A stretch of 64,000 nucleotides of DNA, taken from Macrostomum lignano (Eukaryota). The notes beneath the pieces are model-generated. The model was given only the letters and a program-made list of their open reading frames with translations. It was not told where the DNA came from and made no database searches. Numbering within the stretch: the first letter of the stretch is position 1; the number at the start of each line of letters is the position of its first letter. Below are positions 2,776 through 48,723 of this stretch, piece after piece. The DNA lies in assembly GCA_002269645.1 (NCBI GenBank), contig NIVC01001184.1, forward strand, positions 62,001 to 126,000, given 5' to 3'. Both the position numbers and the translations under genes were made by a program.

Positions 2776-3906
2776 ATGTACGACAGCAGCAATAGTACAG
2801 CCGAAGAAGAAGAACTGCCTTGGTTTGAAATTCCCAGCTGGCGCTGGGCCTTCACTAACATCGTCATTTGGCTGATGCCAACTTTAATGGTTTTCGGAAT
2901 AGTCGTCAACGTTCTCTGCTTCATCACCATCCTACTCAACTCGAAGACTTTCCCTAAAATATCGAGGCGCACGATGTTGATCATTACCAGCTTCGACGCG
3001 CTTTCGCTGGCAATCGGCGGCTTCAACTGCTACCAGATCTACTTGATGCGCACAATGAACTACAAACTGTCCCCGTTTCTGAAGCTCATGAACGAAAACG
3101 CGGCCGCGTGTTACATTGTCAACTATGTCCACAAGTACATACTGAATGGAACGCCGTACTTTCACGTTGGACTTACAGTTGAACGCGTCCTAGCCGTGGT
3201 GATGCCGCTGAAAGTGAAGACAATCATGACTGGACGCAACCACTGCATCATGCTAATCATTCTGTTTCTGTTAGGCAGCATTGACCCGGCCCTGTGGTCT
3301 GCCGAGCAAGAGTACATTGACAACCGCTGCGATAGCAGGACTGACGAAGCATTGTTGGCCGTCTTGGACCCACTGCAGTACAATATCGAGTTCTACGTGT
3401 CAAAGGTGGCACTGTTCTTTGTTCTTCTATCCGGATGCATCATCGTGGCCGTTGCGCTTCGGCTTCAGGCCAGCAAGTTGAGCCGCCTGACCAGCGGCTC
3501 GGCCAACCTGAAGCGCAACAAAATGGTCGGCGCCTGCGCCGCGATGATCGGCATGAACCTCGTGTTCTTCCTGACGCACGCGCCCAGGGCGGCCTTCTCT
3601 GTGTACGAAGGCTACAGCGCCAGGTACTTGTCGCCGAGCAAACAACTAACCGAGAGCCAGTTAGACTTGGGCAATCAAGTTTTGGAGGGCTTCATGTTCT
3701 TGAACAGCATTTTCGATCCGTTTGCTTACTTCATTGGACGAAGCTTTCGTACGGCCTTCTGCCAGACGATTGGGGGCGCCATCTGCCTGGCAACCGCTGG
3801 CCTGTGCGGCAGGCGCCGAAAGGCGTCAGCGAAGGAGTCGTCGGGCATCAACCTGGCCACCTCGGTGACGACGGCGTACAATATTAGGACCACCGCTGCT
3901 GGATGA
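2776..3906 (+). CDS. Rhodopsin-like (class A) GPCR, probable peptide receptor, intronless, 376 aa
   Basis: ATG-to-stop ORF with seven hydrophobic segments. TM3 motif TVERVLAV (E/DRY-like), conserved Cys in TM3 (AACY) and ECL2 (NRCD), TM6 FFLTHAP, TM7 NSIFDPFAY (N/DPxxY-like), Ser/Thr-rich C-tail. Confidence 0.9.
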   Translation: MYDSSNSTAEEEELPWFEIPSWRWAFTNIVIWLMPTLMVFGIVVNVLCFITILLNSKTFPKISRRTMLIITSFDALSLAIGGFNCYQIYLMRTMNYKLSPFLKLMNENAAACYIVNYVHKYILNGTPYFHVGLTVERVLAVVMPLKVKTIMTGRNHCIMLIILFLLGSIDPALWSAEQEYIDNRCDSRTDEALLAVLDPLQYNIEFYVSKVALFFVLLSGCIIVAVALRLQASKLSRLTSGSANLKRNKMVGACAAMIGMNLVFFLTHAPRAAFSVYEGYSARYLSPSKQLTESQLDLGNQVLEGFMFLNSIFDPFAYFIGRSFRTAFCQTIGGAICLATAGLCGRRRKASAKESSGINLATSVTTAYNIRTTAAG

Positions 3907-12249: not shown

Positions 12250-14828
12250 GCCTGGTCAGGGGAGCCACCCTAGCGGCGGGCATTATCACTGAAGACTTAA
12301 TCGCTCGTGCGGTCAGAACCATCAAGCCCTTCAAATCTCCTGGACCTGATGGTATCTACCCTGTTCTTCTTCGTGAAGCAGCCAAGATACCCTCGTTCTT
12401 GAGACTTACCCGCAATCTCATGCGGGCCTCTATCCAGATGGGATACGTTCCCAAGTGCTGGACCAAATCTCGGGTAGTCTTCATTCCCAAACCCGGGGAG
12501 GGTGAACTACCAGAGCGTCAAGGCCTTTAGGCCAATTAGCTTAACGTCAGCAATGCTTAAGCTCACTGAGAGGCTTATTCTCTGGCGGCTGCTTTCTTGC
12601 GAGCTGACAGCAATGCCTCTTAGAAATCATCAGCACGCCTTCCGTACCGGGAGGTCGACTGACAGCGCCCTGCATGCGATTGTCGAGAAGATTGAACGGG
12701 CGGTACTGGGTGACGGTAACGCCCTGGCTCTTTTTCTCGACATTGTTGGCGCCTTCGACAACGTTATCTTTGAAGTGTTTCAGAGGGCCTTCAAAACCGC
12801 AAAGCTCACGCTACCCTCATGCGGTGGATCATGTACATGATCTCTAACCGTACGGTCACTGCCCAACTTCTTGGGCAAACTGCCTCCGCCAGAGTCTGTA
12901 AGGGTGGACCCCAAGGCGGAGTCCTCACCCCGACGCTCTGGAACCTGGTCATGGACGCTCTTCTGGGTGACTCCAGACCTGATCCCGTCTTCAAAGTCGG
13001 GTATGCAGACGACGTCACTGCCATTTTGTCTGGGCCGTTCCCCAGCACGGTCAGGGATCTGATGCAGAGCTTTATCCGCAAAACAGAATCCTGGGCCAAT
13101 GACAACGGTCTGGAACTCTCTGAGCCCAAAACTGTTGCCATTATGTTCACCAGCAGAATACGCTGGAACATACGACCTCTGCAGTTATACGGCAGAGATA
13201 TTGCCTTCGCGCACCAGACCAGATGTCTTAGGGTCATACTTGACCACCGGCTCAACTGGTCCTTCCACGTGAAAGCAAAAGCCAAGCGTGCCTCAGCCAT
13301 CCTGGCCCAGCTCCGACGAGCACTTGGCACTTCTTGGGGTCTATCCCCAAAGCGGCTTTGGTGGATCTACACTTCCGTAGTTAGACCCGCCATTACGTAC
13401 GCCTCGGTTGTCTGGGTTAGCGCTACCCAGGTCAAAAGCCATGCAGATTTGCTCAACACGATCCAGGGCAGAGCGTGTAGGCTCATCTGCAACGCCACCA
13501 GGTCCACGCCCTTTGCCGGCATGGGGCCTTCCTTAATCTACCGCCTCTCGACCTCTTCGTCAGGGGTGAGGCGGCTAGAACGATGCGGCGCTTACTTGAT
13601 GCCGGTGTCAAATTCCTTTACATGAGGGCAACTGCTAAGCGGAACCTCGTCCCGCATAGCGACCTGTGCCTCAACATCCTCAACGAGTGTCAGGCCAATC
13701 GCGTCTTCACCGATGGCATTGCCTCAACAACGCTCAACCTGAGAACAACGCTACTCCGTAGCTATCGACTCGCGCGATACCATCAATGACCACTGGAACC
13801 CCGGTGAGCTTCATTGCTACACCGACGGTTCTAAGCAGTCAGCCAACACCGGTTTTGGTGTTGGAATCTTCCTGAACGAGAGGGTCATCGCAACCCACGC
13901 TCAATACACTGGGGTCAACTCCAGTGTCTTCCAAAATGAAGTTCTCGCCATCAGCTCCTGCACTGCAGAGCTCCTCGCCACTGGCGTAACCGGTAAGAAC
14001 ATCATTTTCCATTCGGACAGCCAAGCTGCCTTGCACGCCATCAGTGGCTGTAGTACCAATTCTGCTACAGTCCTCAACTGTATCAAACTCCTCAACATGT
14101 TGGATTCCACCAACAAAATCACCCTTAAGTGGGTTCCGGGGCATGTGGGGATCCGAGGAAATGAGTTGGCTGACGCCCTTGCAAAAGTTGGCGTTTCTGG
14201 CTCCTCTCTCGGTCCCGAACCCCTTGTTCCGATTCCTGGCTGTGTCATCGACTCGCGCATCAAAGCGTGGATCAGGACCCAGCACCGCTCGACTTGGGCG
14301 AACTGCACTACATGCAGGCAATTCAAAGGCGCTGTCCCTCAGCCCTCTCACCAGCTCCGGAAGCTCCTCTTGCGCCTCTCGCGCAGAGACATCCGGGCTG
14401 CCACCATGACCCTCTCTGGTCACGGCTGCTTCTCCAGGCACCAGTACCTGCAGGGCAACGCCACCAACGCCATCTGCAGTTTCTGTAACTCAGGTGACGA
14501 AACCGCTGAGAATTTCGTCAGCATCTGTCCCGCCTTTACGCGAGCCAGACTCACTTACCTCGGGCCACACACGTACATCTATTACTGAAGCGTGCAAACC
14601 CGAAAACTTTAATCAGCTCATGCGCTGCCTCCGGGCCACCACCCGCAGGGCCGAACTCTCCTTTCTAGAGAGCACTATAGCTGCTGGCGACACTGGGGGA
14701 CCTCCCTGGGGGGCGCCAACCCTTCGTCTATAGCGACGTGTCGGCCGTTCAGGGATTAGCGGAATAGGCGTTCGCGCCTTCCCGCTGTGTCCCCCCGGGA
14801 CAGCCCTGCAGCTAAGTCAAGTAAGTCA
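12250..14828 (+). mobile_element. 5'-truncated non-LTR retrotransposon (RT + RNase H + C-terminal zinc knuckle; I/R1-group, Loa-like), frameshifted
   Basis: Successive frames give KSPGPDGIYP, FIPKPG, RPISL, QHAFR, GGPQGGVLTPTLWN and YADD (RT). They then give YTDGSK, EVLAI, HSDSQAAL and WVPGHVGIRGNELAD.LAK (RNase H), followed by CSFC...ETAENF (CCHC-like). The 3' UTR is structured and ends in an aagtc/aagt tail at ~14813-14828. At least 4 frameshifts. Confidence 0.93.
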
Positions 14829-15329
14829 TGCACCGCTACGTCAACTACTATACGTCTAGTAGACAACTACTACGTCGCAAGTAACTATGTTGAAATATGG
14901 CTTAATGCATCAGCTATTGTGAGTGACAATCCATGTGGTACTCAATACTTGAAAGCATTGGCTATAATGGACATGGAGGCAGCAGTAACCAAAGCCCAGA
15001 GTGAGAAATTAAGCCAAAAAAACTTTTAGATATCATTCTGATGCTACTACGACATTTCGTTCGTAAAAGCAATTATCATCATCAACGCCCTAAAAATGTC
15101 TAAAAACGCCCTAAAATTCATGAATGATTAAGAAAATATTGTATTCACTGTCTATAATTATATGGGCTCCGTAGAAAAATACACAAAATACTACTCACAC
15201 AAGAACACTCCAGCTATATTGTTCCAGTCAATAAAAAAAAACTAACACAGAGGCTCTCATTTCATTTTTCATTGTGGGAGAAACCAGAGTTCATAGAGCA
15301 TAGCACCGATTGGTTGAGTAGCAAACGGT

Positions 15330-15827
15330 TCAATAACTTCCGCCCTTGTTCCAACGCTGTCCGCTCTTGTTCCAGCGCTGTCCACCTTTGTTCCAACGTT
15401 GTCCGCCCTTGTTCCAGCGCTGCCCACCTTTGTTCCAACGTTGTCCGCCCTTGTTCCAGCGCTGCCCACCTTTGTTCCAACGTTGTCCGCCCTTGTTCCA
15501 GCGCTGCCCACCTTTGTTCCAACGTTGTCCGCCCTTGTTCCAGCGCTGTCCGCCCTTGTTCCACTGTCCGCCCTTGTTCCAGCGCTGTCCGCCCTTGTTC
15601 CAACGTTGTCCGCCCTTGTTCCAGCGCTGTCCGCCCTTGTTCCAACGTTGTCCGCCCTTGATCCAACGTTGTCCGCCCTTGTTCCAGCGCTGACCGCCCT
15701 TGTGCTTTCTGCTCCAGTCGATGGCTCTGACGCCGGAGCTATCAGGCAGATTGGCGGCCGCGATGGCGCACAAAAGCGCCGCAGTGGCCGCCAGAAGAAG
15801 AAGATGCCTCGAAGACTTTGTCGGCAT
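15330..15827 (-). CDS. Secreted repetitive peptide precursor (signal peptide + 17 x GGQRWNK-type units), neuropeptide- or antimicrobial-like, 165 aa
   Basis: ATG start followed by a hydrophobic signal-like segment (LLLLAATAALLCAIAAA). Variation among the 21-bp units is mostly synonymous in this frame only (AAG/AAA, GGC/GGT, GGA/GGG, CAA/CAG, CGT/CGC). The single length variant is an in-frame 3-nt deletion (GGQWNK). Confidence 0.75.
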   Translation of the reverse strand: MPTKSSRHLLLLAATAALLCAIAAANLPDSSGVRAIDWSRKHKGGQRWNKGGQRWIKGGQRWNKGGQRWNKGGQRWNKGGQRWNKGGQWNKGGQRWNKGGQRWNKGGQRWNKGGQRWNKGGQRWNKGGQRWNKGGQRWNKGGQRWNKGGQRWNKSGQRWNKGGSY

Positions 15828-15828
15828 T

Positions 15829-15913
15829 CTGTTTGCTTGAAGCAGATACCTTGGTCAGTTAGCAAAAATGTTTACCTGTGAGTTCTGAGTGCAATATACA
15901 TCGGTTATTTATG
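15829..15913 (-). promoter_or_regulatory. Putative core promoter and 47-nt 5'UTR intron of the repeat-peptide gene
   Basis: On the minus strand: CATAAATA (15913-15906), TCAGAA Inr-like about 27 nt downstream, GTAAAC donor at 15875, GCTAAC branch-like site, CAG acceptor at 15829 followed by A-ATG. Confidence 0.35.
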
Positions 15914-16250: not shown

Positions 16251-16725
16251 ATGTGAGGGAGGTCAATGTGAGGGAGGTCAGTGTGAGGGAGGTCAGTGTG
16301 AGGGAGGTCAGTGTGAGGGAGGTCAGTGTGAGGGAGGTCAGCGTGAGAGAGGTCAGTGTGAGGGAGGTCAGTGTGAGGTAGGTCAGTGTGAGGGAGGTCA
16401 ATGTGAGGGGGTCAGTGTGAGGGAGGTCAGTGTAAGGGAGGTCAGTGTGATGGAGGTCAGTGTGAGGGAGGTCAGTGTGAGGGAGGTCAATGTGAGGGGG
16501 TCAGTTTAAGGGAGGTCAGTGTGAGGGAGGTCAGTGTGAGGTAGGTCAGTGTAAGGGAGGTCAGTGTGAGGGAGGTCAATGTGAGGGGGTCAGTGTGAGG
16601 GAGGTCAGTGTAAGGGAGGTCAGTGTGAGGTAGGTCAATGTGAGGGTGGTCAATGTGATGGAGGTCAGCGTGATGGAGGTCAGTGTGAGGGTCAGAGTGA
16701 GGGAGGTGGGGGAGGTGAGTGAGGG
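16251..16725. repeat. 15-bp minisatellite (gtcagtgtgagggag)n
   Basis: About 30 degenerate tandem units read directly. Confidence 0.9.
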
Positions 16726-23789: not shown

Positions 23790-26600
23790 GCATGAAGTCG
23801 ACAGACAGGTGGCTGATAGAGAATATATAGGCAGGCCGTTGATAAAGACATAGATGGGCGGCTGATAGAGATAGAGATAGAGCTGATAGAGATAAGAAAG
23901 CTGATAAAGAGGAGAAAGGCAGGCGACTGATAGAGACGAGACAGAAAGGCGGCTGATAGACAGGAGATAGACAGGCCGCTGATAGAGAGGAGACAGACAG
24001 GCCGCTGATAGAGAGGAGACAGACAGGCGACTGATAGAGACGAGACAGAAAGGCGGCTGATAGAGAGGAGACAGACAGGCGACTGATAGAGACGAGACAG
24101 AAAGGCGGCTGATAGAGAGGAGACAGACAGGCCGCTGATAGAGAGGAGACAGACAGGCCGCTGATAGAGAGGAGACAGACAGGCCGCTGATAGAGAGGAG
24201 ACAGACAGGCCGCTGATAGAGAGGAGACAGACAGGCCGCTGATAGAGAGGAGACAGACAGGCGACTGATAGAGACGAGACAGAAAGGCGGCTGATAGAGA
24301 GGAGACAGACAGGCGACTGATAGAGACGAGACAGAAAGGCGGCTGATAGAGAGGAGATAGACAGGCCGCTGATAGAGAGGAGACAGACAGGCCGCTGATA
24401 GAGAGGAGACAGACAGGCCGCTGATAGAGAGGAGACAGACAGGCCGCTGATAGAGAGGAGATAGACAGGCCGCTGATAGAGAGGAGACAGACAGGCAGCT
24501 GATAGAGAGGAGACAGACAGGCATGGTTGATGGAGAGGAGACAGACAGGCCGCTGATAGAGAGGAGACAGACAGGCATGGTTGATGGAGAGGAGACAGAC
24601 AGGCCGCTGATAGAGAGGAGACAGACAGGCATGGTTGATGGAGAGGAGATAGACAGGCAGCTGATAGAGAGGAGATAGACAGGCAGCTGATAGAGAGGAG
24701 ATAGACAGGCCGCTGATAGAGAGGAGACAGACAGGCAGCTGATAGAGAGGAGATAGACAGGCAGCTGATAGAGAGGAGACAGGCAGGCGGCTGATAGAGA
24801 GGAGACGGGCGGGTGATAGAGAGGAGACGGGCGGCTGATAGAGAGGAGACGGGCGGCTGATAGAGAGGAGACGGGTGGCTGATAGAGGGGAGACGGGCGG
24901 CTGATAGAGTGGAGATAGACAGAAAGCTGATAAAGAGGAGACAGGCAGGCGGCTGATAGAGAGGAGACAAGCCGCTGATAGAGACAGAGAGGAGATAGAC
25001 AAGCGGCTGATAGAGAGGAGACGGGCGGCTGATAGAGAGGAGACAGGCCGCTGATAGAGAGGAGACAGACAGGCCGCTGATAGAGAGGAGACAGACAGGC
25101 CGCTGATAGAGAGGAGACAGACAGGCCGCTGATAGAGAGGAGACAGACAGGCGACTGATAGAGACGAGACAGAAAGGCGGCTGATAGAGAGGAGACAGAC
25201 AGGCGACTGATAGAGACGAGACAGAAAGGCGGCTGATAGAGAGGAGATAGACAGGCCGCTGATAGAGAGGAGACAGGCAGGCCGCTGATAGAGAGGAGAC
25301 AGACAGGCCGCTGATAGAGAGGAGACAGACAGGCCGCTGATAGAGAGGAGATAGACAGGCCGCTGATAGAGAGGAGACAGACAGGCAGCTGATAGAGAGG
25401 AGATAGACAGGCCGCTGATAGAGAGGAGACAGACAGGCAGCTGATAGAGAGGAGATAGACAGGCAGCTGATAGAAAGGAGATAGACAAGCGGCTGATAGA
25501 GAGGAGACGGGCGGCTGATAGAGAGGAGACGGGTGGCTGATAGAGAGGAGACGGGCGGCTGATAGAGAGGAGACGGGTGGCTGATAGAGAGGAGACGGGC
25601 GGCTGATAGAATGGAGATAGACAGAAAGCTGATAAAGAGGAGACAGGCAGGCGGCTGATAGAGAAGAGACAAGCCGCTGATAGAGAGGAGATAGACAGGC
25701 CGCTGATAGAGAGGAGACAGACAGGCAGCTGATAGAGAGGAGACAGACAGGCCGCTGATAGAGAGGAGATAGACAGGCCGCTGATAGAGAGGAGATAGAC
25801 AGGCGGCTGATAGAGAGGAGACAGACAGGCCGCTGATAGAGAGGAGATAGACAAGCGGCTGATAGAGAGGAGACGGGCGGCTGATAGAGAGGAGACAGAC
25901 AGGCGGCTGATAGAGAGGAGACAGACAGGCGGCTGATAGAGAGGAGATAGACAAGCGGCTGATAGAGAGGAGACGGGCGGCTGATAGAGAGGAGACAGGC
26001 CGCTGATAGAGAGGAGACGGGCGGCTGATAGAGAGGAGACGGGCGGCTGATAGAGGGGAGACGGGCGGCTGATAGAGTGGAGATAGACAGAAAGCTGATA
26101 AAGAGGAGACAGGCAGGCGGCTGATAGAGAGGAGACAAGCCGCTGATAGAGAGGAGATAGACAAGCGGCTGATAGAGAGGAGACGGGCGGCTGATAGAGA
26201 GGAGACAGAAAGCTGATAGAGAGGAGACAGACAGGCCGCTGATAGAGAGGAGATAGACAAGCGGCTGATAGAGAGGAGACGGGCGGCTGATAGAGAGGAG
26301 ACGGGCGGCTGATAGAGAGGAGACAGACAGGCAGCTTATAGAGAGGAGATAGACAAGCGGCTGATAGAGAGGAGACGGGCGGCTGATAGAGAGGAGACGG
26401 GCGGCTGATAGAGAGGAGACAGGCAGCTTATAGAGAGGAGATAGACAAGCGGCTGATAGAGAGGAGACGGGCGGCTGATAGAGAGGAGACAGGCAGCTGA
26501 TAGAGAGGAGACGGGCGGCTGATAGAGAGGAGACGGGCGGCTGATAGAGAGGAGACGGGCGGCTGATAGAGAGTAGACGGGCGGCTGATGGAGAGATAGA
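23790..26600. repeat. 22/26-bp purine-rich minisatellite (gctgatagagaggagacagacaggcc / gctgatagagaggagacgggcg)
   Basis: More than 100 tandem units with blockwise variants. Confidence 0.95.
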
Positions 26601-27149: not shown

Positions 27150-28340
27150 CCATCCGCCCCTTCCTCTGCATCCGCCCTTCCTCTGCATCTGCCCTTCCTC
27201 TGCATCCGCCCTTCCTCTGCATCTGCCCTTCCTCTGCATCCGCCCCTTCCTCTACACCCGCCCTTCCTCTGCATCTGCCCTTCCTCTGATTCCATCCCTT
27301 CCTCTGCATCTGCCCTTCCTCTGCATGCATCCCTTCCTCTGCATCCGCCCTTCCTCTGCATGCATCCCTTCCTCTGCATCCGCCCCTTCCTCTACACCCG
27401 CCCTTCCTCTGCATCCGCCCTTCCTCTGCATCCGCCCTTCCTCTGCATCCGCCCTTCCTCTGCATCCGCCCCTTCCTCTGCATCCGCCCCTTCCTCTACA
27501 CCCGCCCTTCCTCTGCATCTGCCCTTCCTCTGATTCCATCCCTTCCTCTGCATCCGCCCTTCCTCTGCATGCATCCCTTCCTCTGCATCTGCCCCTTCCT
27601 CTGCATCCGCCCTTCCTCTGCATCCGCCCTTCCTCTGCATGCATCCCTTCCTCTGCATCTGCCCCTTCCTCTACACCCGCCCTTCCTCTGCATCCGCCCT
27701 TCCTCTGCATCCGCCCCTTCCTCTGCATCCGCCCTTCCTCTGCATCTGCCCCTTCCTCTACACCCGCCCTTCCTCTGCATCCGCCCTTCCTCTGCATCCG
27801 CCCTTCCTCTGCATCCGCCCCTTCCTCTGCATCCGCCCCTTCCTCTGCATCCGCCCCTTCCTCTGCATCCGCCCTTCCTCTGATTCCATCCCTTCCTCTG
27901 ATTCCATCCCTTCCTCTGCATCCGCCCCTTCCTCTGCATCCGCCCTTCCTCTGATTCCATCCCTTCCTCTGATTCCATCCCTTCCTCTTCATCCATCCCT
28001 TCCTCTGCATCCGCCCCTTCCTCTGCATCCGCCCTTCCTCTGCATCCGCCCCTTCCTCTGCATCCGCCCTTCCTCTGCATCTGCCCCTTCCTCTACACCC
28101 GCCCTTCCTCTGCATCCGCCCTTCCTCTGCATCCGCCCCTTCCTCTGCATCCGCCCTTCCTCTGCATCTGCCCCTTCCTCTACACCCGCCCTTCCTCTGC
28201 ATCCGCCCTTCCTCTGCATCCGCCCCTTCCTCTGCATCTGCCCTTCCTCTGATTCCATCCCTTCCTCTTCATCCATCCCTTCCTCTGCATCTGCCCCTTC
28301 CTCTGCATCCGCCCTTCCTCTGCATCCGCCTCTTCCTCTC
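27150..28340. repeat. 17/18-bp pyrimidine-rich minisatellite (ttcctctgcatccgccc[c])n
   Basis: Tandem units read directly. Confidence 0.95.
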
Positions 28341-29124
28341 CATCTGCTTTTTTCTTTCCATCTGCTCCTTCTAAAAATAAATATCAAAATTGAGCAACAG
28401 GAGTATGAACGGGATGCTGCATGCAAAGCATGGATTTATCTCTCTCGCTTCATTGCGGTCGCTATTTAGGCCATATCATTTATTTACTTCGTGGAAAGGG
28501 CGTGAAGTTATGACATAATGCTTCTGGCGCTTCGTTAGGCCCATCATGTCTAAAATGTGCGCGAATTGGTTCCAGGCTCACCACGAAGTGCGAAAACAAA
28601 CCGAATTTTCCAAAACAGTCGATAGTCAGAGATAAGGATAGGTGGATCATGCCGCCTATTGCCTCAGAAAAGGCCCAGGGTCTGGGATTCTAGACAATAG
28701 ACCAATACTTGACTATTGTGTGCGAAAAATCGTGCTTAGAATTTGAGCCTAATCCTACGGACTTAAAATGTGCGAATTTAAATTCGGTTCCCAGTAAAAA
28801 TGAATTAATAGACACAGCCCTTATCGCAAACCGTCTGTCACCCAATTTTTCGCACCTACGAGTAAAAAGTAACTCGAAAATCGGCTCAATTCGCACACGT
28901 TGTCTATGTTTTGGCACGGGTGTGAAGATGGAATTGCCCAAGGCAGCTTCGGCCACTCATCAATTCGTAAAAGGACTGAAAGATTTCATACTTTTTGTTT
29001 GCGTAAAAGTTTGCCTACTTTTTGTGGGGCCCTCTTAGGTAAGATTTTAGATAAGCTAAGGTCAAAGTGATTAGATTGGACCCAAAAGCACCTTTGAGTA
29101 TATAAAAGCTATAGCTAGCTAGTC

Positions 29125-31212
29125 TCTTCATCAAACCGGCTGATTCCTTCTCTAACTGTCTCTGTGTATCCCAGCACCTGAGTCTATCATGAATTCAGAA
29201 TGAGCTGAGTTTGGCCTAGCTCAGCATTTTCACTCAAACACACAGAGGACTTGAGAGCCGCTATAATCTTCATCAAACCGGCTGATTCCTTCTCTAACTG
29301 TCTCTGTGTATCCCAGCACCTGAGTCTATCATGAATTCAGAATGAGCTGAGTTTGGCCTAGCTCAGCATTTTCCTCAAACACACAGAGGACTTGAGAGCC
29401 GCTATAATCTTCATCAAACCGGCTGATTCCTTCTCTAACTGTCTCTGTGTATCCCAGCACCTGAGTCTATCATGAATTCAGAATGAGCTGAGTTTGGCCT
29501 AGCTCAGCATTTTCACTCAAACACAGAGAGGACTTGAGAGCCGCTATAATCTTCATCAAACCGGCTGATTCCTTCTCTAACTGTCTCTGTGTATCCCAGC
29601 ACCTGAGTCTATCATGAATTCAGAATGAGCTGAGTTTGGCCTAGCTCAGCATTTTCACTCAAACACAGAGAGGACTTGAGAGCCGCTATAATCTTCATCA
29701 AACCGGCTGATTCCTTCTCTAACTGTCTCTGTGTATCCCAGCACCTGAGTCTATCATGAATTCAGAATGAGCTGAGTTTGGCCTAGCTCAGCATTTTCAC
29801 TCAAACACAGAGAGGACTTGAGAGCCGCTATAATCTTCATCAAACCGGCTGATTCCTTCTCTAACTGTCTCTGTGTATCCCAGCACCTGAGTCCATCATG
29901 AATTCAGAATGAGCTGAGTTTGGCCTAGCTCAGCATTTTCACTCAAACACAGAGAGGACTTGAGAGCCGCTATAATCTTCATCAAACCGGCTGATTCCTT
30001 CTCTAACTGTCTCTGTGTATCCCAGCACCTGAGTCCATCATGAATTCAGAATGAGCTGAGTTTGGCCTAGCTCAGCATTTTCACTCAAACACAGAGAGGA
30101 CTTGAGAGCCGCTATAATCTTCATCAAACCGGCTGATTCCTTCTCTAACTGTATCTGTGTATCCCAGCACCTGAGTCTATCATGAATTCAGAATGAGCTG
30201 AGTTTGGCCTAGCTCAGCATTTTCACTCAAACACAGAGAGGACTTGAGAGCCGCTATAATCTTCATCAAACCGGCTGATTCCTTCTCTAACTGTCTCTGT
30301 GTATCCCAGCACCTGAGTCTATCATGAATTCAGAATGAGCTGAGTTTGGCCTAGCTCAGCATTTTCACTCAAACACAGAGAGGACTTGAGAGCCGCTATA
30401 ATCTTCATCAAACCGGCTGATTCCTTCTCTAACTGTCTCTGTGTATCCCAGCACCTGAGTCTATCATGAATTCAGAATGAGCTGAGTTTGGCCTAGCTCA
30501 GCATTTTCACTCAAACACAGAGGACTTGAGAGCCGCTATAATCTTCATCAAACCGGCTGATTCCTTCTCTAACTGTCTCTGTGTATCCCAGCACCTGAGT
30601 CTATCATGAATTCAGAATGAGCTGAGTTTGGCCTAGCTCAGCATTTTCACTCAAACACAGAGAGGACTTGAGAGCCGCTATAATCTTCATCAAACCGGCT
30701 GATTCCTTCTCTAACTGTCTCTGTGTATCCCAGCACCTGAGTCTATCATGAATTCAGAATGAGCTGAGTTTGGCCTAGCTCAGCATTTTCACTCAAACAC
30801 AGAGAGGACTTGAGAGCCACTATAATCTTCATCAAACCGGCTGATTCCTTCTCTAACTGTCTCTGTGTATCCCAGCACCTGAGTCTATCATGAATTCAGA
30901 ATGAGCTGAGTTTGGCCTAGCTCAGCATTTTCACTCAAACACAGAGAGGACTTGAGAGCCGCTATAATCTTCATCAAACCGGCTGATTCCTTCTCTAACT
31001 GTCTCTGTGTATCCCAGCACCTGAGTCTATCATGAATTCAGAATGAGCTGAGTTTGGCCTAGCTCAGCATTTTCACTCAAACACAGAGGACTTGAGAGCC
31101 GCTATAATCTTCATCAAACCGGCTGATTCCTTCTCTAACTGTCTCTGTGTATCCCAGCACCTGAGTCTATCATGAATTCAGAATGAGCTGAGTTTGGCCT
31201 AGCTCAGCATTT
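29125..31212. repeat. 142-bp satellite, ~14.7 near-identical copies
   Basis: Unit starts (tcttcatcaaacc) at 29125, 29267, 29408, 29550 ... 30968, 31108. Each unit has an EcoRI site and a gctgag...ctcagc hairpin. Confidence 0.96.
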
Positions 31213-31563
31213 TAACTTTAAAATACAGAAACCATTTCGCTCTTTCGCTCTTTCGCGTAATTGACCAGAACAACCAATTAGGGCTAATTACGGTAGTTAG
31301 TAATTGATAGCCATAAATCTAGGATGAGTTCTCGGAGAAAATTAGGAGTTTAGGTACAAATTAGAGTTTATTAAGTTATGTAGATATGTATCTTCAATTA
31401 CTAATCTTTAAACAAGGTGTTTTAGGCCTATACGAGTACTATAGGCCTACGTTTTGCTTTAGGCCCTAGTGACTGAAATTTCCGATAGGCCAAATGTATA
31501 TTTTCTTTCGATATGCCCATTAATGTTGGTTCTATTTAGTGGCGGTGCAGCCTTGGCGGTGCG

Positions 31564-32255: not shown

Positions 32256-35200
32256 TCTGTCTATCAATCTACTTGGATCAAGGGTGCCTCTCTAACTGCT
32301 TCTGTCTATCAATCTACTTGGATCAAGGGCGCCTCTCTAACTGCTTCTGTCTATCAATCTACTTGGATCAAGGGTGCCTCTCTAACTGCTTCTGTCTATC
32401 AATCTACTTGGATCAAGGGTGCCTCTCTAACTGCTTCTGTCTATCAATCTACTTGGATCAAGGGCGCCTCTCTAACTGCTTCTGTCTATCAATCTACTTG
32501 GATCAAGGGTGCCTCTCTAACTGCTTCTGTCTATCAATCTACTTGGATCAAGGGCGCCTCTCTAACTGCTTCTGTCTATCAATCTACTTGGATCAAGGGC
32601 GCCTCTCTAACTGCTTCTGTCCATCAATCTACATGTATGAAGGGCGCCTCTCTAACTGCATCTGTCCATCAATCTACATGTATGAAGGGCGCCTCTCTAA
32701 CTGCTTCTGTCTATCAATCTACTTGGATCAAGGGCGCCTCTCTAACTGCTTCTGTCTATCAATCTACTTGGATCAAGGGCGCCTCTCTAACTGCCTCTGT
32801 CTATCAATCTACTTGGATCAAGGGCGCCTCTCTAACTGCTTCTGTCCATCAATCTACATGTATGAAGGGCGCCTCTCTAACTGCGAATTCTGTCCATCAA
32901 TCTACTTGTATGAAGGGCGCCTCTCTAACTGCTTCTGTCTATCAATCTACTTGGATCAAGGGCGCCTCTCTAACTGCTTCTGTCTATCAATCTACTTGGA
33001 TCAAGGGCGCCTCTCTAACTGCTTCTGTCCATCAATCTACATGTATGAAGGGCGCCTCTCTAACTGCTTCTGTCTATCAATCTACTTGGATCAAGGGCGC
33101 CTCTCTAACTGCTTCTGTCTATCAATCTACTTGGATCAAGGGCGCCTCTCTAACTGCTTCTGTCCATCAATCTACATGTATGAAGGGCGCCTCTCTAACT
33201 GCGAATTCTGTCCATCAATCTACTTGTATGAAGGGCGCCTCTCTAACTGCTTCTGTCTATCAATCTACTTGGATCAAGGGCGCCTCTCTAACTGCTTCTG
33301 TCTATCAATCTACTTGGATCAAGGGCGCCTCTCTAACTGCTTCTGTCTATCAATCTACATGTATGAAGGGCGCCTCTCTAACTGCTTCTGTCCATCAATC
33401 TACATGTATGAAGGGCGCCTCTCTAACTGCTTCTGTCCATCAATCTACATGTATGAATGGCGCCTCTCTAACTGCTTCTGTCCATCAATCTACATGTATG
33501 AAGGGTGCCTCTCTAACTGCTTCTGTCCATCAATCTACATGTATGAAGGGCGCCTCTCTAACTGCTTCTGTCTATCAATCTACTTGGATCAAGGGCGCCT
33601 CTCTAACTGCTTCTGTCCATCAATCTACATGTATGAAGGGCGCCTCTCTAACTGCTTCTGTCCATCAATCTACATGTATGAAGGGCGCCTCTCTAACTGC
33701 TTCTGTCTATCAATCTACTTGGATCAAGGGCGCCTCTCTAACTGCTTCTGTCTATCAATCTACTTGGATCAAGGGCGCCTCTCTAACTGCTTCTGTCCAT
33801 CAATCTACATGTATGAAAGGCGCCTCTCTAACTGCTTCTGTCCATCAATCTACATGTATGAAGGGCGCCTCTCTAACTGCTTCTGTCCATCAATCTACAT
33901 GTATGAAGGGCGCCTCTCTAACTGCTTCTGTCCATCAATCTACATGTATGAAGGGCGCCTCTCTAACTGCTTCTGTCTATCAATCTACTTGGATCAAGGG
34001 CGCCTCTCTAACTGCTTCTGTCTATCAATCTACTTGGATCAAGGGCGCCTCTCTAACTGCTTCTGTCCATCAATCTACATGTATGAAGGGCGCCTCTCTA
34101 ACTGCGAATTCTGTCCATCAATCTACTTGTATGAAGGGCGCCTCTCTAACTGCTTCTGTCTATCAATCTACTTGGATCAAGGGCGCCTCTCTAACTGCTT
34201 CTGTCTATCAATCTACATGTATGAAGGGCGCCTCTCTAACTGCTTCTGTCCATCAATCTACATGTATGAAGGGCGCCTCTCTAACTGCTTCTGTCCATCA
34301 ATCTACATGTATGAAGGGCGCCTCTCTAACTGCTTCTGTCCATCAATCTACATGTATGAAAGGCGCCTCTCTAACTGCTTCTGTCCATCAATCTACATGT
34401 ATGAAGGGCGCCTCTCTAACTGCTTCTGTCCATCAATCTACATGTATGAAGGGCGCCTCTCTAACTGCTTCTGTCCATCAATCTACATGTATGAAGGGCG
34501 CCTCTCTAACTGCTTCTGTCTATCAATCTACTTGGATCAAGGGCGCCTCTCTAACTGCTTCTGTCTATCAATCTACTTGGATCAAGGGCGCCTCTCTAAC
34601 TGCTTCTGTCTATCAATCTACTTGGATCAAGGGCGCCTCTCTAACTGCTTCTGTCCATCAATCTACATGTATGAAGGGCGCCTCTCTAACTGCATCTGTC
34701 CATCAATCTACATGTATGAAGGGCGCCTCTCTAACTGCTTCTGTCTATCAATCTACTTGGATCAAGGGCGCCTCTCTAACTGCTTCTGTCTATCAATCTA
34801 CTTGGATCAAGGGCGCCTCTCTAACTGCTTCTGTCTATCAATCTACTTGGATCAAGGGCGCCTCTCTAACTGCTTCTGTCCATCAATCTACATGTATGAA
34901 GGGCGCCTCTCTAACTGCGAATTCTGTCCATCAATCTACTTGTATGAAGGGCGCCTCTCTAACTGCTTCTGTCTATCAATCTACATGTATGAATGGCGCC
35001 TCTCTAACTGCTTCTGTCTATCAATCTACTTGGATCAAGGGCGCTCTCTAACTGCTTCTGTCCATCCATCTACATGTATGAAGGGCGCCTCTCTAACTGC
35101 TTCTGTCTATCAATCTACTTGGATCAAGGGCGCCTCTCTAACTGCTTCTGTCTATCAATCTACTTGGATCAAGGGCGCCTCTCTAACTGCTTCTGTCCAT

Positions 35201-36732
35201 CAATCTACATGTATGAAGGGCGCCTCTCTAACTGCTTCTGTCTATCAATCTACATGTATGAAGGGCGCCTCTCTAACTGCGAATTCTGTCCATCAATCTA
35301 CATGTATGAAGGGCGCCTCTCTAACTGCTTCTGTCTATCAATCTACATGTATGAAGGGCGCCTCTCTAACTGCTTCTGTCCATCAATCTACATGTATGAA
35401 GGGCGCCTCTCTAACTGCTTCTGTCTATCAATCTACTTGGATCAAGGGCGCCTCTCTAACTGCTTCCGTCCATCAATCTACATGTATGAAGGGCGCCTCT
35501 CTAACTGCTTCCGTCCATCAATCTACATGTATGAAGGGCGCCTCTCTAACTGCTTCTGTCCATCAATCTACTTGTATGAAGGGCGCCTCTCTAACTGCTT
35601 CTGTCCTGCATCAATCTACATGTATGAAGGGCGCCTCTCTAACTGCTTCTGTCCATCAATCTACATGTATGAAGGGCGCCTCTCTAACGCGAATTCTGTC
35701 CATCAATCTACATGTATGAATGGCGCCTCTCTAACTGCGAATTCTGTCCATCAATCTACTTGTATGAAGGGCGCCTCTCTAACTGCTTCTGTCTATCAAT
35801 CTACATGTATGAATGGCGCCTCTCTAACTGCTTCTGTCTATCAATCTACATGTATGAAGGGCGCCTCTCTAACTGCTTCTGTCTATCAATCTACATGTAT
35901 GAAGGGCGCCTCTCTAACTGCTTCTGTCCATCAATCTACATGTATGAAGGGCGCCTCTCTAACTGCTTCTGTCCATCAATCTACATGTATGAATGGCGCC
36001 TCTCTAACTGCGAATTCTGTCCATCAATCTACTTGTATGAAGGGCGCCTCTCTAACTGCGAATTCTTTCCATCAATCTACATGTATGAAGGGCGCCTCTC
36101 TAACTGCTTCTGTCTATCAATCTACTTGTATGAAGGGCGCCTCTCTAACTGTTTCTGTCTATCAATCTACATGTATGAAGGGCGCCTCTCTAACTGCTTC
36201 TGTCTATCAATCTACATGTATGAAGGGCGCCTCTCTAACTGCTTCTGTCCATCAATCTACATGTATGAATGGCGCCTCTCTAACTGCGAATTCTGTCCAT
36301 CAATCTACATGTATGAAGGGCGCCTCTCTAACTGCTTCTGTCTATCAATCTACATGTATGAAGGGCGCCTCTCTAACTGCTTCTGTCTATCAATCTACAT
36401 GTATGAAGGGCGCCTCTCTAACTGCTTCTGTCTATCAATCTACATGTATGAAGGGCGCCTCTCTAACTGCTTCTGTCTATCAATCTACATGTATGAATGG
36501 CGCCTCTCTAACTGCTTCTGTCTATCAATCTACTTGGATCAAGGGCGCTCTCTAACTGCTTCTGTCCATCAATCTACATGTATGAAGGGCGCCTCTCTAA
36601 CTGTTTCTGTCCATCAATCTACATGTATGAAGGGCGCCTCTCTAACTGCTTCTGTCCATCAATCTACATGTATGAAGGGCGCCTCTCTAACTGCTTCTGT
36701 CCATCAATCTACATGTATTAAGGGCGCCTCTC
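32256..36732. repeat. 45/48-bp satellite, ~99 units, with higher-order structure
   Basis: Unit ctgcttctgt(c/t)..atcaatctac(ttggatc/atgtatg)aagggcgcctctctaa, with a 48-bp variant containing gcgaattc. Confidence 0.96.
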
Positions 36733-38250
36733 TGCATTTGTCTATTAATATATCTGGGAGTAGGCGACTCTTCACCGCCTTGTATAGTTCTCCGTCCTAC
36801 CATCATATAATTTGTCAGATCTTTGAAATTTCCCCGTTCTGATAGGGCCTAGGCCTATAGCCTAGCATATATCTGTTTCTTTTCTAATAAGGGTTTTACT
36901 AAATGTATATTATTGTAGTCATATTATTAAATTTTATATTGTGCCTTTGGCTTTGCTCGTATTACTTACAGTTACAATACTCGTAATTGTACTTATTTAC
37001 AATTAAATTAAATTAGACGTTTACTAGGCCTTTTACTCTTCAATTATACAGTAAAGCGGCAACCATTAGGCCTAGTAGGCCGCGCCTATCTTGGCCTGTC
37101 TTGTTGATTCGATCTTCTTTTCTATGTTGCAGAATTCTTAAAAGAAAATGTATATGGAATTATATGTCGCTTTTAGCTACTGTTAGTAGAAATAAAAGCA
37201 TTTAATAGGAATATTTTGTCAAAATGGAAAAATCCTCCTATGTATTTTGCATTAAAATTGGTACATTTTTAAGCAAAAAATATTTGCAATTACGTGGCTT
37301 AAATGAGTTGTTCTTTTAAAAAAAAGATCTTATTCAATGTAAGGTAGAAGAATCAAGCGAGAAATAAGTTTTTTTGACAATTTTTGTTCGTTCGGTTTTG
37401 AAGATTCTTCTGTTCGGTTGATGATTCTGAAATCTGAAAACCGAACCGAACATGTAATTTGGTATCATCAACCGAACACTAGAATTTTTTGCTTAACTAT
37501 ACATCAGATTGGTATGTGTGTTATATTACTTTGTAGAAAATTTAACACTGAATTCAAAAAGTATTTTGTTTTGAATGTAAGTTAAAAATTGTGGTCTGTA
37601 GACCAATTCTTCTGCAGACATCCCAAATCAAGAAAAAACTCTGAAACGCGTATTTCTTTAATAATTTCTATCAATAATGCTCATTTTCTCGAGTATCTAT
37701 TGAGTAGATTGTCTAAACTTTATCTCATTTTGTAGATGAGAATGTTTTCTTTCAAATGATATGGCACTTTTATAGACTCTTTAAATATATTTCCAATGAG
37801 ACAGTAAAAACGAAAGTCACTTGCATGTTCGGTTTTGAAGATCCCTTGTTCGGTTGATGAGATCTTACCCTAAAGCAACCCATGTCAAACTTCTAGTTCT
37901 ATATTTTTCACATAGCTGCTTACGAATTCTAAAACAACTGAACCCATAGCAGAGCATAAACTATGCTGATGGTCGTTCTTCATTACATTATGAAAGGTGG
38001 GGTGAGGTGTCATCACCATCTGTGCGCTCATTTTGTCTGCCGCCGTCTTTTCGTCTGCCGGGAGACGAAATCACTTTTCGGAAGTAAGAGTAGTAGAAGT
38101 AAAATTAGCTGCAAAAATTATTAAACTAATTTTCCATAATGGAATATTTTGAGACATGCAGAGAGTTATAATGAGATATTATTTTATGTATGCGTAATTT
38201 TGTTTATCGCAATATAATATAATATTTAAACATCGTTGATACTTGATAGA

Positions 38251-40126: not shown

Positions 40127-40906
40127 TCACACGTGAATCCGTTTGTACTTCATCCATTGCAGCATCTCTTCGTTGTTGGCAGAAAAGCCGGAGTCACTCA
40201 GCGGCAGGCTGGCGTCAAAGTAAGGCAGCAGAACGCACTGCCTCCTCACCGGGTGCCAGTAGTATCCGATGCAGTCCTCAAACTCGAACACAAGACAGAC
40301 CTGGGAGCAGTGGAAGTGAGTTTTAGCCCTTGGTTCCTTGATCCAGCAGCCCGGGTCGGGTTGATTGTACGCGACGATTTCCGTGCGAACGAATTTACTT
40401 GTGGTCGCTTTGTTAGCGATTCGGTTGGCCACAGCGGCATCCTCGTAGCAGAGAACGTTGTTTAGATCATTGCAAGTCTCGTCCCTCAGCTTTCTTTCTG
40501 AGTCACTTTTTATTGTCACACAGTCTTGGCTGCTGTCCTGATTATTTGGTTCCGTACTTAGGAAATATGACCCACTACCATCCGTGACCTGGCCATCCTT
40601 GATCCAAACCCAGCCGTCTTTCTGAGTGCCTCTCTCGTTCAGCGCATCGACCAGTCCGACCCACCATCTGTCACCAGAAAAGCTCGCAGCCGTCATGGCG
40701 TCGTGCACAGACTTGCTGATCATCTCCTGACCGTGGTCGTGACAAATCCTAATAGCATCGCAGAATGTCACCTGTTTATCGTAATTCTTGACACACCAAG
40801 ACTTTCCAGAATTGTTGACCGCAATCAACCCGCCAGAACAAGTCGCGGCAACAGAGGCAGTCATTAACAGAAGGGCAGCTACCATTGGAAGGAGTAGAAA
40901 TGCCAT
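40127..40906 (-). CDS. Secreted C-type lectin domain + PAN/Apple-like domain protein, intronless, 259 aa
   Basis: Signal peptide (MAFLLLPMVAALLLMTASVAA). CTLD features include A...C, WWVGL, WVWIKDG, EPNN..QDC and ETC....VLC. The C-terminal HCSQVC...DCIGYYW...QCVL pattern is PAN-like. Confidence 0.88.
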   Translation of the reverse strand: MAFLLLPMVAALLLMTASVAATCSGGLIAVNNSGKSWCVKNYDKQVTFCDAIRICHDHGQEMISKSVHDAMTAASFSGDRWWVGLVDALNERGTQKDGWVWIKDGQVTDGSGSYFLSTEPNNQDSSQDCVTIKSDSERKLRDETCNDLNNVLCYEDAAVANRIANKATTSKFVRTEIVAYNQPDPGCWIKEPRAKTHFHCSQVCLVFEFEDCIGYYWHPVRRQCVLLPYFDASLPLSDSGFSANNEEMLQWMKYKRIHV

Positions 40907-47805: not shown

Positions 47806-48723
47806 ATGCACTGCAACTCTAACATTATCACGCTTTGTGCTCTGTCGCTGGCACAGCTGGCGCTCTCGGCCGAGTACGAAACCTCGACAGGCGGCTGCGT
47901 GGTGCCGCAGACTCCGCAGCACTCGCTGACGTCCTCGAGCGCCCGCATGTGCGCCTTCCTGTGCTCTCAGCTCCGTCGTCCCTGCATCGCCTGGAGCCAC
48001 CGCGCAGGCGTCTGCAACATGTCGGACAGCCTCCAGACCGCCAGTCTGACGAACGACACCGACTGCCAGTCGTGGAGCGCCCTGCTCCAGCTCGGCCTCG
48101 TCGCCTTCTGGCCCATGAGCAACGCCACTCGGACTCGCAATGCGGTCTCGAACAGCGGCCATCTCGACCTGCAGGAGAACATCCCGATGCAGTACACGGA
48201 CAGCGCCGTCAACTTCACTGGTCAGTCGGGTGTGTCAGAGAGGTTCAACATTGACCAGCTGACTTCGGTGTGTCTCACCAGCCTCACCATGTCAGTGTGG
48301 GTCAAGGTCACCAATGCGTCAAGGGGTTCGATGCCTCTGCTGGAGGGCCTCACCATGCCTTCTTCAGCTCACACTCGATTATTTCTTTATCCAACAACTA
48401 CCGACATCGAGTTCACCGTTTCGTCGTCGACGGTCTCAGTGTCTGGACCCACCGACACGGCCAGCGGTTGGACCCACATCGCCGCGGTGTACGACAAGCA
48501 GACTCCAGAAATCAGGATCCTCGTCAACGGAACTCGACAGGCCACCAGCGGCTCGGCCACCGCTTTGACCTCGTGCGCGGACTTCGGCAGCAGCGTGCAG
48601 ATCGGAGCCGTCAGCCGCATTATCAGCCACAACCGCGTGTTCCAAGGCTACATGAGATGCTTCGGAGTGTCGGAGAGAGCTCTGAGCGACTCCGAAGTTG
48701 CTCTGCTGCAGGGACTGTGTTGA
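47806..48723 (+). CDS. Secreted PAN/Apple + LamG/concanavalin A-like (pentraxin-type) domain protein, intronless, ~305 aa
   Basis: First ATG at 47806 followed by a signal-like segment (IITLCALSLAQLALS). CAFLC...CIAWS...C is PAN-like. LVAFWPM, LTMSVWVK, WTHIAAVYD, ILVNG, VQIG and FQGYM are LamG_3 motifs. Confidence 0.88.
   Translation: MHCNSNIITLCALSLAQLALSAEYETSTGGCVVPQTPQHSLTSSSARMCAFLCSQLRRPCIAWSHRAGVCNMSDSLQTASLTNDTDCQSWSALLQLGLVAFWPMSNATRTRNAVSNSGHLDLQENIPMQYTDSAVNFTGQSGVSERFNIDQLTSVCLTSLTMSVWVKVTNASRGSMPLLEGLTMPSSAHTRLFLYPTTTDIEFTVSSSTVSVSGPTDTASGWTHIAAVYDKQTPEIRILVNGTRQATSGSATALTSCADFGSSVQIGAVSRIISHNRVFQGYMRCFGVSERALSDSEVALLQGLC

Follow-up and report, generated by a model that had tools for sequence, protein, structure and literature searches.

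A probable Macrostomum lignano gene for a putatively secreted protein of 17 tandem GGQRWNK-type units

Small secreted proteins built from short basic repeats have been described from several animals. The Phragmatopoma protein Pc-1 is a small basic Gly/aromatic/Lys cement protein in which the decapeptide VGGYGYGGKK is repeated 15 times, and armadillidin is a Gly-rich antimicrobial peptide with GGGFHR repeats. The cohesive protein of the adhesive organ of Macrostomum lignano, Mlig-ap1, has been shown to interact with polyanions by way of its charge (Wunderer et al., 2019; PMC6410801). In the case of peptide signals, planarian prohormones have been recognized in silico by a signal sequence, by basic sites flanking the peptides and by a length of <200 aa (Collins et al., 2010; PMC2953531), and the hallmark of the Wamide/MIP (allatostatin-B) family is an amidated C-terminal Trp with a small aliphatic residue before it (PMC4307165). 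We have analyzed a 64-kb window, that is the whole stretch of 64,000 nucleotides of M. lignano DNA under study, and compare one of its ORFs, the repeat ORF, with these systems. For this ORF, a sequence-only reading had described an ATG, a signal-like N-terminus, a pro-region ending in SRKHK and 17 units, and translation reproduced all of them. The locus is composed of the following parts.

15330..15827, minus strand: complete single-exon ORF of 165 aa, ATG to TGA (translation)
15753..15827, minus strand: signal-peptide-like N-terminus, aa 1-25, MPTKSSRH followed by LLLLAATAALLCAIAAA (hydropathy, crude rule, AlphaFold2)
15699..15752, minus strand: non-repeat region, aa 26-43, NLPDSSGVRAIDWSRKHK, 18 aa ending in SRKHK (translation)
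15345..15698, minus strand: array of 17 units, 354 nt (TRF, translation)
15330..15344, minus strand: truncated 18th unit and tail, GGSY, with the TGA stop (translation)
15884..15913, minus strand: putative core promoter with a TATA-like CATAAATA at 15913-15906 (pattern search)
15229..15273, minus strand: possible 3' end signals, AATGAA twice, at +57 and +64 past the stop (pattern search)

According to the ORF listing and its translation, the ORF comprises 498 nt on the minus strand, a strand assignment that the sequence-only reading did not give, and encodes MPTKSSRHLLLLAATAALLCAIAAANLPDSSGVRAIDWSRKHK, followed by the 17 units and by GGSY at the stop. An in-frame TGA is located 10 codons 5' of the ATG, and position -3 of this ATG is an A. 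Within the ORF, unique sequence hugs the array, with 129 nt before and 15 nt after it. For the chain of about 140 residues that would be left after removal of the signal peptide, a composition with 36 Gly, 19 Lys, 18 Arg, 18 Trp, 17 Asn and 17 Gln residues, a mass of about 16 kDa, a net charge of about +35 and a pI of 12 were computed. The last seven residues of the non-repeat region, DWSRKHK, may perhaps represent a degenerate unit that has retained the R and K positions, the segment being identical to the consensus unit in 10 of 21 nt. The stretch GGQRWNKGGQRWNK is named as antigen for an antibody to the repeat protein. Upstream of the ORF, the TATA-like element sits at -86 from the ATG and an Inr-like TCAGA (15888-15884, minus strand) at -61, which is 25 nt downstream of the TATA-like element. 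On the other side, the AATGAA pair is followed by the GU/U-rich stretch TGTGTTAGTTTTTTTTTATTG, the whole 3' region lying 57-101 nt beyond the stop, and of the canonical hexamers, neither AATAAA nor ATTAAA was detected by the pattern search over 500 nt. These flanking promoter and 3' end signals are only suggestive.

The array consists of 16 GGQRWNK-type heptads and one GGQWNK, and 14 of the 17 units read exactly GGQRWNK. Unit 2 is GGQRWIK (N>I, with ATC at 15660-15662), unit 17 is SGQRWNK (G>S, with AGC at 15363-15365), and unit 7 is GGQWNK (15555-15572) due to the deletion of the Arg codon (3 nt), which is the sole length change in the array. Synonymous codon alternatives are found for Gly1 (GGC/GGT), Gly2 (GGA/GGG/GGT), Gln (CAG/CAA), Arg (CGC/CGT) and Lys (AAG/AAA). 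The translation therefore shows again what had been noticed initially, namely five codon positions that vary synonymously, the changes N>I and G>S, and one in-frame indel. Both amino acid changes are singletons close to the ends of the array, and the recurrent variants, present in at least two units, are synonymous in five of five cases. Beyond the two singletons, there are no exchanges of K/R, Q/N or G/A/S inside the array, and at the sequence level such an exchange-free array fits a presumed constraint that is residue-specific and not merely compositional. In TRF analyses, a higher-order period of 42 nt, which the sequence-only reading had not mentioned, gave 93% matches versus 82% at 21 nt. 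Units 9-16 are near-identical double units of this 42-nt repeat, and the two unit subtypes of which it is made differ in 5 of 21 nt, all of them at third codon positions. Due to the 42-nt higher-order repeat, the variation of the array amounts to eight variant types and not to many independent events; six of these types are synonymous and two are non-synonymous in the ATG frame.

The array contains no stop codon in any of the six reading frames and, for that reason, an open frame by itself is no evidence for coding. The probability of obtaining at least six synonymous types out of eight in the ATG/signal frame was 0.001 by simulation and 0.0009 by binomial calculation, the expected synonymous fraction being 0.19 when all changes are counted and 0.29 when only transitions are. 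When the best of the six frames was taken in the same simulation on the consensus unit, P was 0.04. The dN/dS-like ratio of the array is 0.08. Seven other minisatellites of the window, with periods of 15 to 45 that are divisible by 3, were used as controls. Frameshifting unit-length changes (+/-1, +/-2, +4 or -5) are present in all seven, one of which has +3 changes as well, more numerous than its frameshifting ones. In the best frame, synonymous fractions ranged from 4/15 to 4/6 in the controls and from 5/7 to 6/8 in the GGQRWNK array. The array is thus distinct from the non-coding minisatellites of the window, as had been claimed, since all seven controls carry frameshifting changes and lack a comparable synonymous excess. 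Also, the 129-nt unique part of the ORF has a GC content of 0.60 and a GC3 of 0.70, the latter falling within the range of three neighbouring genes (0.61-0.78). The codons chosen in the ORF (GGC/GGA, CAG, CGC, AAC, AAG) are those preferred by the neighbours, and the GC content rises to about 0.6 in an island that matches the extent of the ORF, the flanks having values of 0.30-0.45.

Synonymous variation of this kind might also be the result of a constraint on the plus strand, where a PPLFQRC frame, which might belong to an exon of some larger gene, has its wobble positions in common with GGQRWNK. In this frame, five of the eight variant types (5/7 in a second tally) and all five of the recurrent ones are synonymous. 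However, one synonymous type fewer is obtained than in the sense frame although the expected synonymous fraction is similar, and the PPLFQRC ORF (15346..15693, plus strand) has no ATG, starts and stops inside the array, and lacks unique flanking coding sequence. The plus-strand sequence upstream of it is a degenerate retrotransposon, and we consider a constraint on this strand very improbable. Explanations other than those weighed in this analysis, among them that the ORF is part of some larger gene, retain only a small share of the probability.

A more serious objection is that the repeat ORF might be no gene at all, but a minisatellite whose 21-mer happens to be stop-free and which has an in-frame ATG upstream and a hydrophobic stretch by chance. 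The six open frames speak for such a minisatellite, tandem repeats occupy 28% of the window and give rise to dozens of long ORFs, and a set of only eight variant types was evaluated in an array that was picked post hoc. Against this explanation, the synonymous excess falls exactly in the frame of the ATG and the signal peptide, the sole indel is in frame as opposed to the frameshifts in every control array, and the non-repeat 129 nt display gene-like GC3 and codon use inside a GC island that is bounded by the ORF. A correction for six frames and about eight arrays still leaves a joint probability well below 0.01.

The N-terminus of the repeat ORF is formed by a basic n-region and a hydrophobic core of 17 residues, with a Kyte-Doolittle mean over 9 residues of up to 2.6, and signal cleavage would be expected near AIA-AA-N, at AxA-type sites. 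Among the 77 ATG-ORFs of at least 60 aa in the window, the repeat ORF was the only one to pass a crude strict signal-peptide rule. In shuffled sequence about 1% of the ORFs pass the same rule, a low rate that argues against a chance hydrophobic stretch; yet with about 0.6 signal-like ORFs per window expected from shuffled sequence, a non-gene could also account for a single one. AlphaFold2 predicted a helix at residues 5-25 (pLDDT of about 77) as the sole moderately confident element. The repeats had a pLDDT of <50 and a folded domain was not predicted, which fits a repeat part that would be intrinsically disordered according to the model. The features of the N-terminus make it likely that the repeat product is secreted.

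No Pfam families were detected in the repeat ORF. A word-indexed search of 5.8 billion proteins, including the UniRef entries of M. lignano, returned only two matches with E values of at least 4 and no relative, and an exact-sequence look-up of the repeat ORF and three neighbouring genes in the protein collection gave no record. That the ORF is missing from the UniRef proteome of M. lignano speaks mildly against a gene, or else the gene is unannotated. Similarly, when contigs from metagenomes and from prokaryotic genomes were scanned by back-translation, no match to the repeat ORF was obtained, Rfam yielded none for the whole 64-kb window, and tblastn and blastn revealed no paralogues of the repeat ORF inside the window. 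In a phmmer search of 1.84 billion representatives, 436 matches were obtained at E < 1e-3. As homologues, these matches were discarded, for every one inspected aligns to the repeat only, via heptad periodicity and composition. Their repeats include DISGQRV, GGQRMEV, GGRRWVR and GGYKKNK, and the N-terminus of the repeat ORF is common to none of the inspected matches. With such periodic queries, HMMER E-values down to 1e-29 are no indication of homology.

Many entries of the public collections that match the heptad, among them P0019, P0020, P0034 and P0089, evidently are 21-nt minisatellites of eukaryotes in conceptual translation (for example RGGRRWV x20, LNKSLQR xN). Another candidate, the word-indexed match P0001 from a 597-nt environmental contig in ENA with WNKGGQWNQGGQ-like low complexity, was rejected as a relative, its N-terminus not being common with the repeat ORF and its E value being 4. 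It carries SSWNKGGQWNQGGQWNKGGQGGRWNQGGQGGRW, which is the closest motif-level match to WNKGGQ found, and has no signal-like N-terminus; judged by its sequence, the likeness of P0001 is probably convergent low complexity. In full-text literature, the motifs GGQRWN, QRWNK, RWNKGG and WNKGGQ gave two unrelated chance matches only. The initial remark that the peptide family was not recognized is in line with these results, as no named family was matched in Pfam, in the protein searches or in the literature motif search. The repeat ORF is, as far as its sequence tells, a member of no named family and would be lineage-restricted. In favour of a non-gene, it may be added that databases are full of similar translated heptad minisatellites (P0019, P0020, P0089) and that neither a homologue, nor an annotation, nor a canonical poly(A) signal was found. 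Considering both sides, we regard a non-gene as rather improbable and hold with good confidence that 15330..15827 is a real coding gene. The array is very probably protein-coding and under purifying selection at the amino acid level, and on this point the earlier proposal gains support from the synonymous excess (P of about 0.001), the in-frame indel, the neighbour-like codons and GC3 and the signal-like start.

Like the planarian spp/npp prohormones (Collins et al., 2010; PMC2953531) and FMRFamide-type precursors, the repeat ORF is small, its 165 aa being below the limit of 200 aa. Multi-copy precursors of flatworms and other invertebrates have an N-terminal signal sequence, recognized by the crude rule in the case of the repeat ORF, followed by tandem copies of a short peptide with a basic residue at each boundary, and a constraint on the peptide sequence, as in the GGQRWNK array, is another feature of such precursors. 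In contrast to known precursors, the repeat ORF possesses single Lys sites instead of KR or RR, and it lacks both a Gly that could donate the amide and spacers of an acidic or variable kind. Its copy number of 17 and its charge of +35 are extreme, sequence similarity to any known precursor is absent, and expression and processing are, in the case of the repeat ORF, putative. Across the units, the polymer reads W-N-K-G-G-Q-R-W, which likens it to the Wamide/MIP peptide MIP7 from Platynereis, AWNKNSMRVWamide (PMC4307165), for in both a WNK start supplies the first of two Trp residues, and the second follows at a distance of about 7 and has an Arg in its vicinity. Due to this WNK...RW likeness, membership in the Wamide/MIP family was considered, and it was ruled out since there is no amidated C-terminal Trp. 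Instead of the sequence W-G-basic, every Trp is followed by Asn-Lys or Ile-Lys, the position before Trp is occupied by Arg (Gln in unit 7) and not by a small aliphatic residue, and each Trp would need to serve two peptides. The resemblance is superficial.

We tentatively favour the view that the repeat ORF is a real gene whose product is secreted and cleaved into GGQRWN-type peptides, although we rate this whole chain of events as somewhat less likely than not. According to this proposal, a single-exon, lineage-restricted gene of Macrostomum would be transcribed and would give rise to a 165-aa pre-protein, which would enter the secretory pathway through its N-terminal signal peptide and in which purifying selection would hold the 17 tandem GGQRWNK heptads identical in amino acids. 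The spacer-free precursor would be cleaved behind every Lys, at sites of the form R-x-x-K with a following G, and the first of these cuts would lie behind the RKHK that closes the non-repeat region. After removal of the Lys by a carboxypeptidase, the non-amidated hexapeptide GGQRWN ([M+H]+ 717.34) would be left in about 14 copies, together with GGQRWI, SGQRWN and GGQWNKGGQRWN as minor variants and with the C-terminal GGSY. Once released, the peptides might be bioactive as diffusible signals, be it as neuropeptide, hormone or pheromone.

With regard to the basic sites, Lys ends every unit, with an Arg at P4 and a G to follow, and the non-repeat region ends in RKHK directly before unit 1. All 17 candidate cleavage sites are monobasic, consisting of a single Lys. 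Single Lys is the least used P1 residue of prohormone convertases (Veenstra's and Devi's rules). For the motif class that combines a basic P4 with a basic P1, a positive predictive power of 35% was determined with pig prohormones (PMC3499383). As originally suggested, R-W-N-K thus fits a P4/P1 basic motif, but the release of GGQRWN is not established by it, given the 35% of this class and the single Lys. Both a Gly-basic amidation signal and an acidic spacer are absent from the repeat precursor, and a charge of +35, a pI of 12, no amidation Gly and no acidic spacer are atypical of neuropeptide precursors. Conservation residue by residue, without K/R, Q/N or G/S drift, would suit the role of a ligand. 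Cleavage into GGQRWN is plausible from the sequence but not clearly better than an intact polymer. The margin by which we favour the precursor over an intact polycation is narrow, as sites that are all monobasic Lys and the lack of both an amidation signal and acidic spacers depart from the usual prohormone. That GGQRWN constitutes an undescribed, Macrostomum-restricted family of non-amidated signalling peptides, encoded in 17 spacer-free copies and released at monobasic Lys, seems rather doubtful at present.

If the gene is real and its product stays uncleaved, a secreted disordered polycation of about 16 kDa with a charge of +35 and one Trp per 7 residues would result, which is quite possible even if it is not our first choice. 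Such a polycation would bind polyanions or membranes by charge and by cation-pi contacts. It might be a gland secretion with cohesive, adhesive or coacervating properties, it might form an antimicrobial coat or, as Gln and Lys each occur once per unit, it might act as a matrix or plug protein that transglutaminase could cross-link. A net charge of +35 at a pI of 12 in a chain without acidic spacers, the failure of AlphaFold2 to find a folded domain and the fact that single-Lys sites are poor convertase substrates are all in agreement with this possibility. Also, the architecture resembles that of the Phragmatopoma cement protein Pc-1. In proteins of the Pc-1 or armadillidin type, as in the repeat ORF, a signal peptide is followed by about 15 short Gly-rich repeats, each of which contains one aromatic and one or two basic residues, and the products have about 16-18 kDa or less and a high pI. 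However, the aromatic residue in the repeat ORF is Trp and not Tyr/DOPA as in Pc-1 or Phe/His as in armadillidin, and there is no sequence relationship.

With Mlig-ap1, whose K/R-rich secreted repeats act by charge, M. lignano itself offers a precedent for a polycation (Wunderer et al., 2019; PMC6410801). Mlig-ap1 and the repeat ORF product are similar in being secreted (in the latter case presumably so), repetitive and extremely cationic, and the KR-regions of Mlig-ap1 and the repeat ORF come from the same genus and are without homologues outside the lineage. In contrast, the KR-rich regions alone account for >3,600 aa in Mlig-ap1, which in addition has lectin, vWD and other domains, whereas the repeat ORF is far smaller and domain-free. 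The units differ as well, with Gly, Gln, Trp and Asn being present in that of the repeat ORF. The homology search with the repeat ORF returned no Macrostomum proteins, the presence of Mlig-ap1 in the database not being confirmed. Gland-specific orphan secreted proteins are common in Macrostomum, which would again suit a polycation; for example, 31 of 76 prostate-limited transcripts had no BLAST match (PMC5977470). On the other hand, structural or adhesive repeats usually allow conservative exchanges (K/R, G/S/A, Q/N), and here 14 of 17 units are identical, protein identity being maintained despite synonymous differences of up to 5/21 nt and with a dN/dS-like ratio of 0.08. In addition, there is almost no Tyr for DOPA chemistry, and the hydrophobicity is below that of a typical amphipathic antimicrobial peptide. 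The uncleaved cationic polymer, which the sequence-only reading had itself raised as an alternative, has about the same likelihood as cleavage into peptides and, by analogy, the repeat ORF would work like a compact multi-copy precursor or like a small cationic repeat secretion.

In the surroundings of the repeat gene, the following features were found in the window.

2776-3906, plus strand: rhodopsin-family GPCR, single-exon, intact, 376 aa (7tm_1, E = 5.6e-10)
12819-13625 (RT) and 14031-14588 (RNase H), plus strand: degenerate non-LTR retrotransposon, its parts in different frames
40127-40906, minus strand: C-type lectin, single-exon, 259 aa, with hydrophobic N-terminus, an intact-looking secreted-protein gene
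47806-48723, plus strand: LamG_3/concanavalin-like protein, single-exon, 305 aa, an intact-looking secreted-protein gene

The GPCR is located about 11 kb away from the repeat gene, and the LamG_3 protein is 83% identical to A0A1I8I643 of M. lignano, a value that points either to a diverged duplicate or to a congeneric species. About 300 nt downstream of the repeat gene lies the retrotransposon, whose RT part is 92% identical to an M. lignano UniRef entry named 'WSC domain-containing protein'; this entry is probably a chimeric gene model that includes a transposon fragment. Taken together, the identities of 92% and 83% place the window in the genus Macrostomum. Tandem arrays add up to 17,860 nt of the window (28%), with examples at 23900-26578, 27151-28344, 29125-31217 and 32256-36733. 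They include a 45-mer repeated 99 times, a 26-mer repeated 108 times with a strong purine skew and a 17-mer repeated 68 times, and a 142-mer present in 14.8 copies at 99% identity represents a recently amplified satellite. The period of the arrays is often a multiple of 3, yet frameshifting indels are present. Upstream of the repeat gene, only 425 nt from its ATG and just past the putative promoter, a 15-mer minisatellite begins (TGTGAGGGAGGTCAG, 31 copies, 16252-16707), which is non-coding because it shows -1 frameshifts and no synonymous bias.

No concept is overturned by these results, since precursors with multiple peptide copies are an established class, as are cationic repeat secretions. 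If it is expressed, the repeat ORF would be a gene for a secreted product, confined to its lineage and overlooked by standard annotation and by homology searches due to its minisatellite appearance, and the case suggests that codon-periodic variation between units can pick coding arrays from a genome of which more than a quarter consists of tandem repeats. Should GGQRWN truly be released, and this at monobasic Lys sites throughout, this would imply a processing protease specificity that is undocumented for flatworm prohormones. M. lignano serves as a transgenic model in studies of adhesion, regeneration and sexual conflict and, therefore, either a hexapeptide signal or a Trp/Arg/Lys polycation would be directly testable in this animal.
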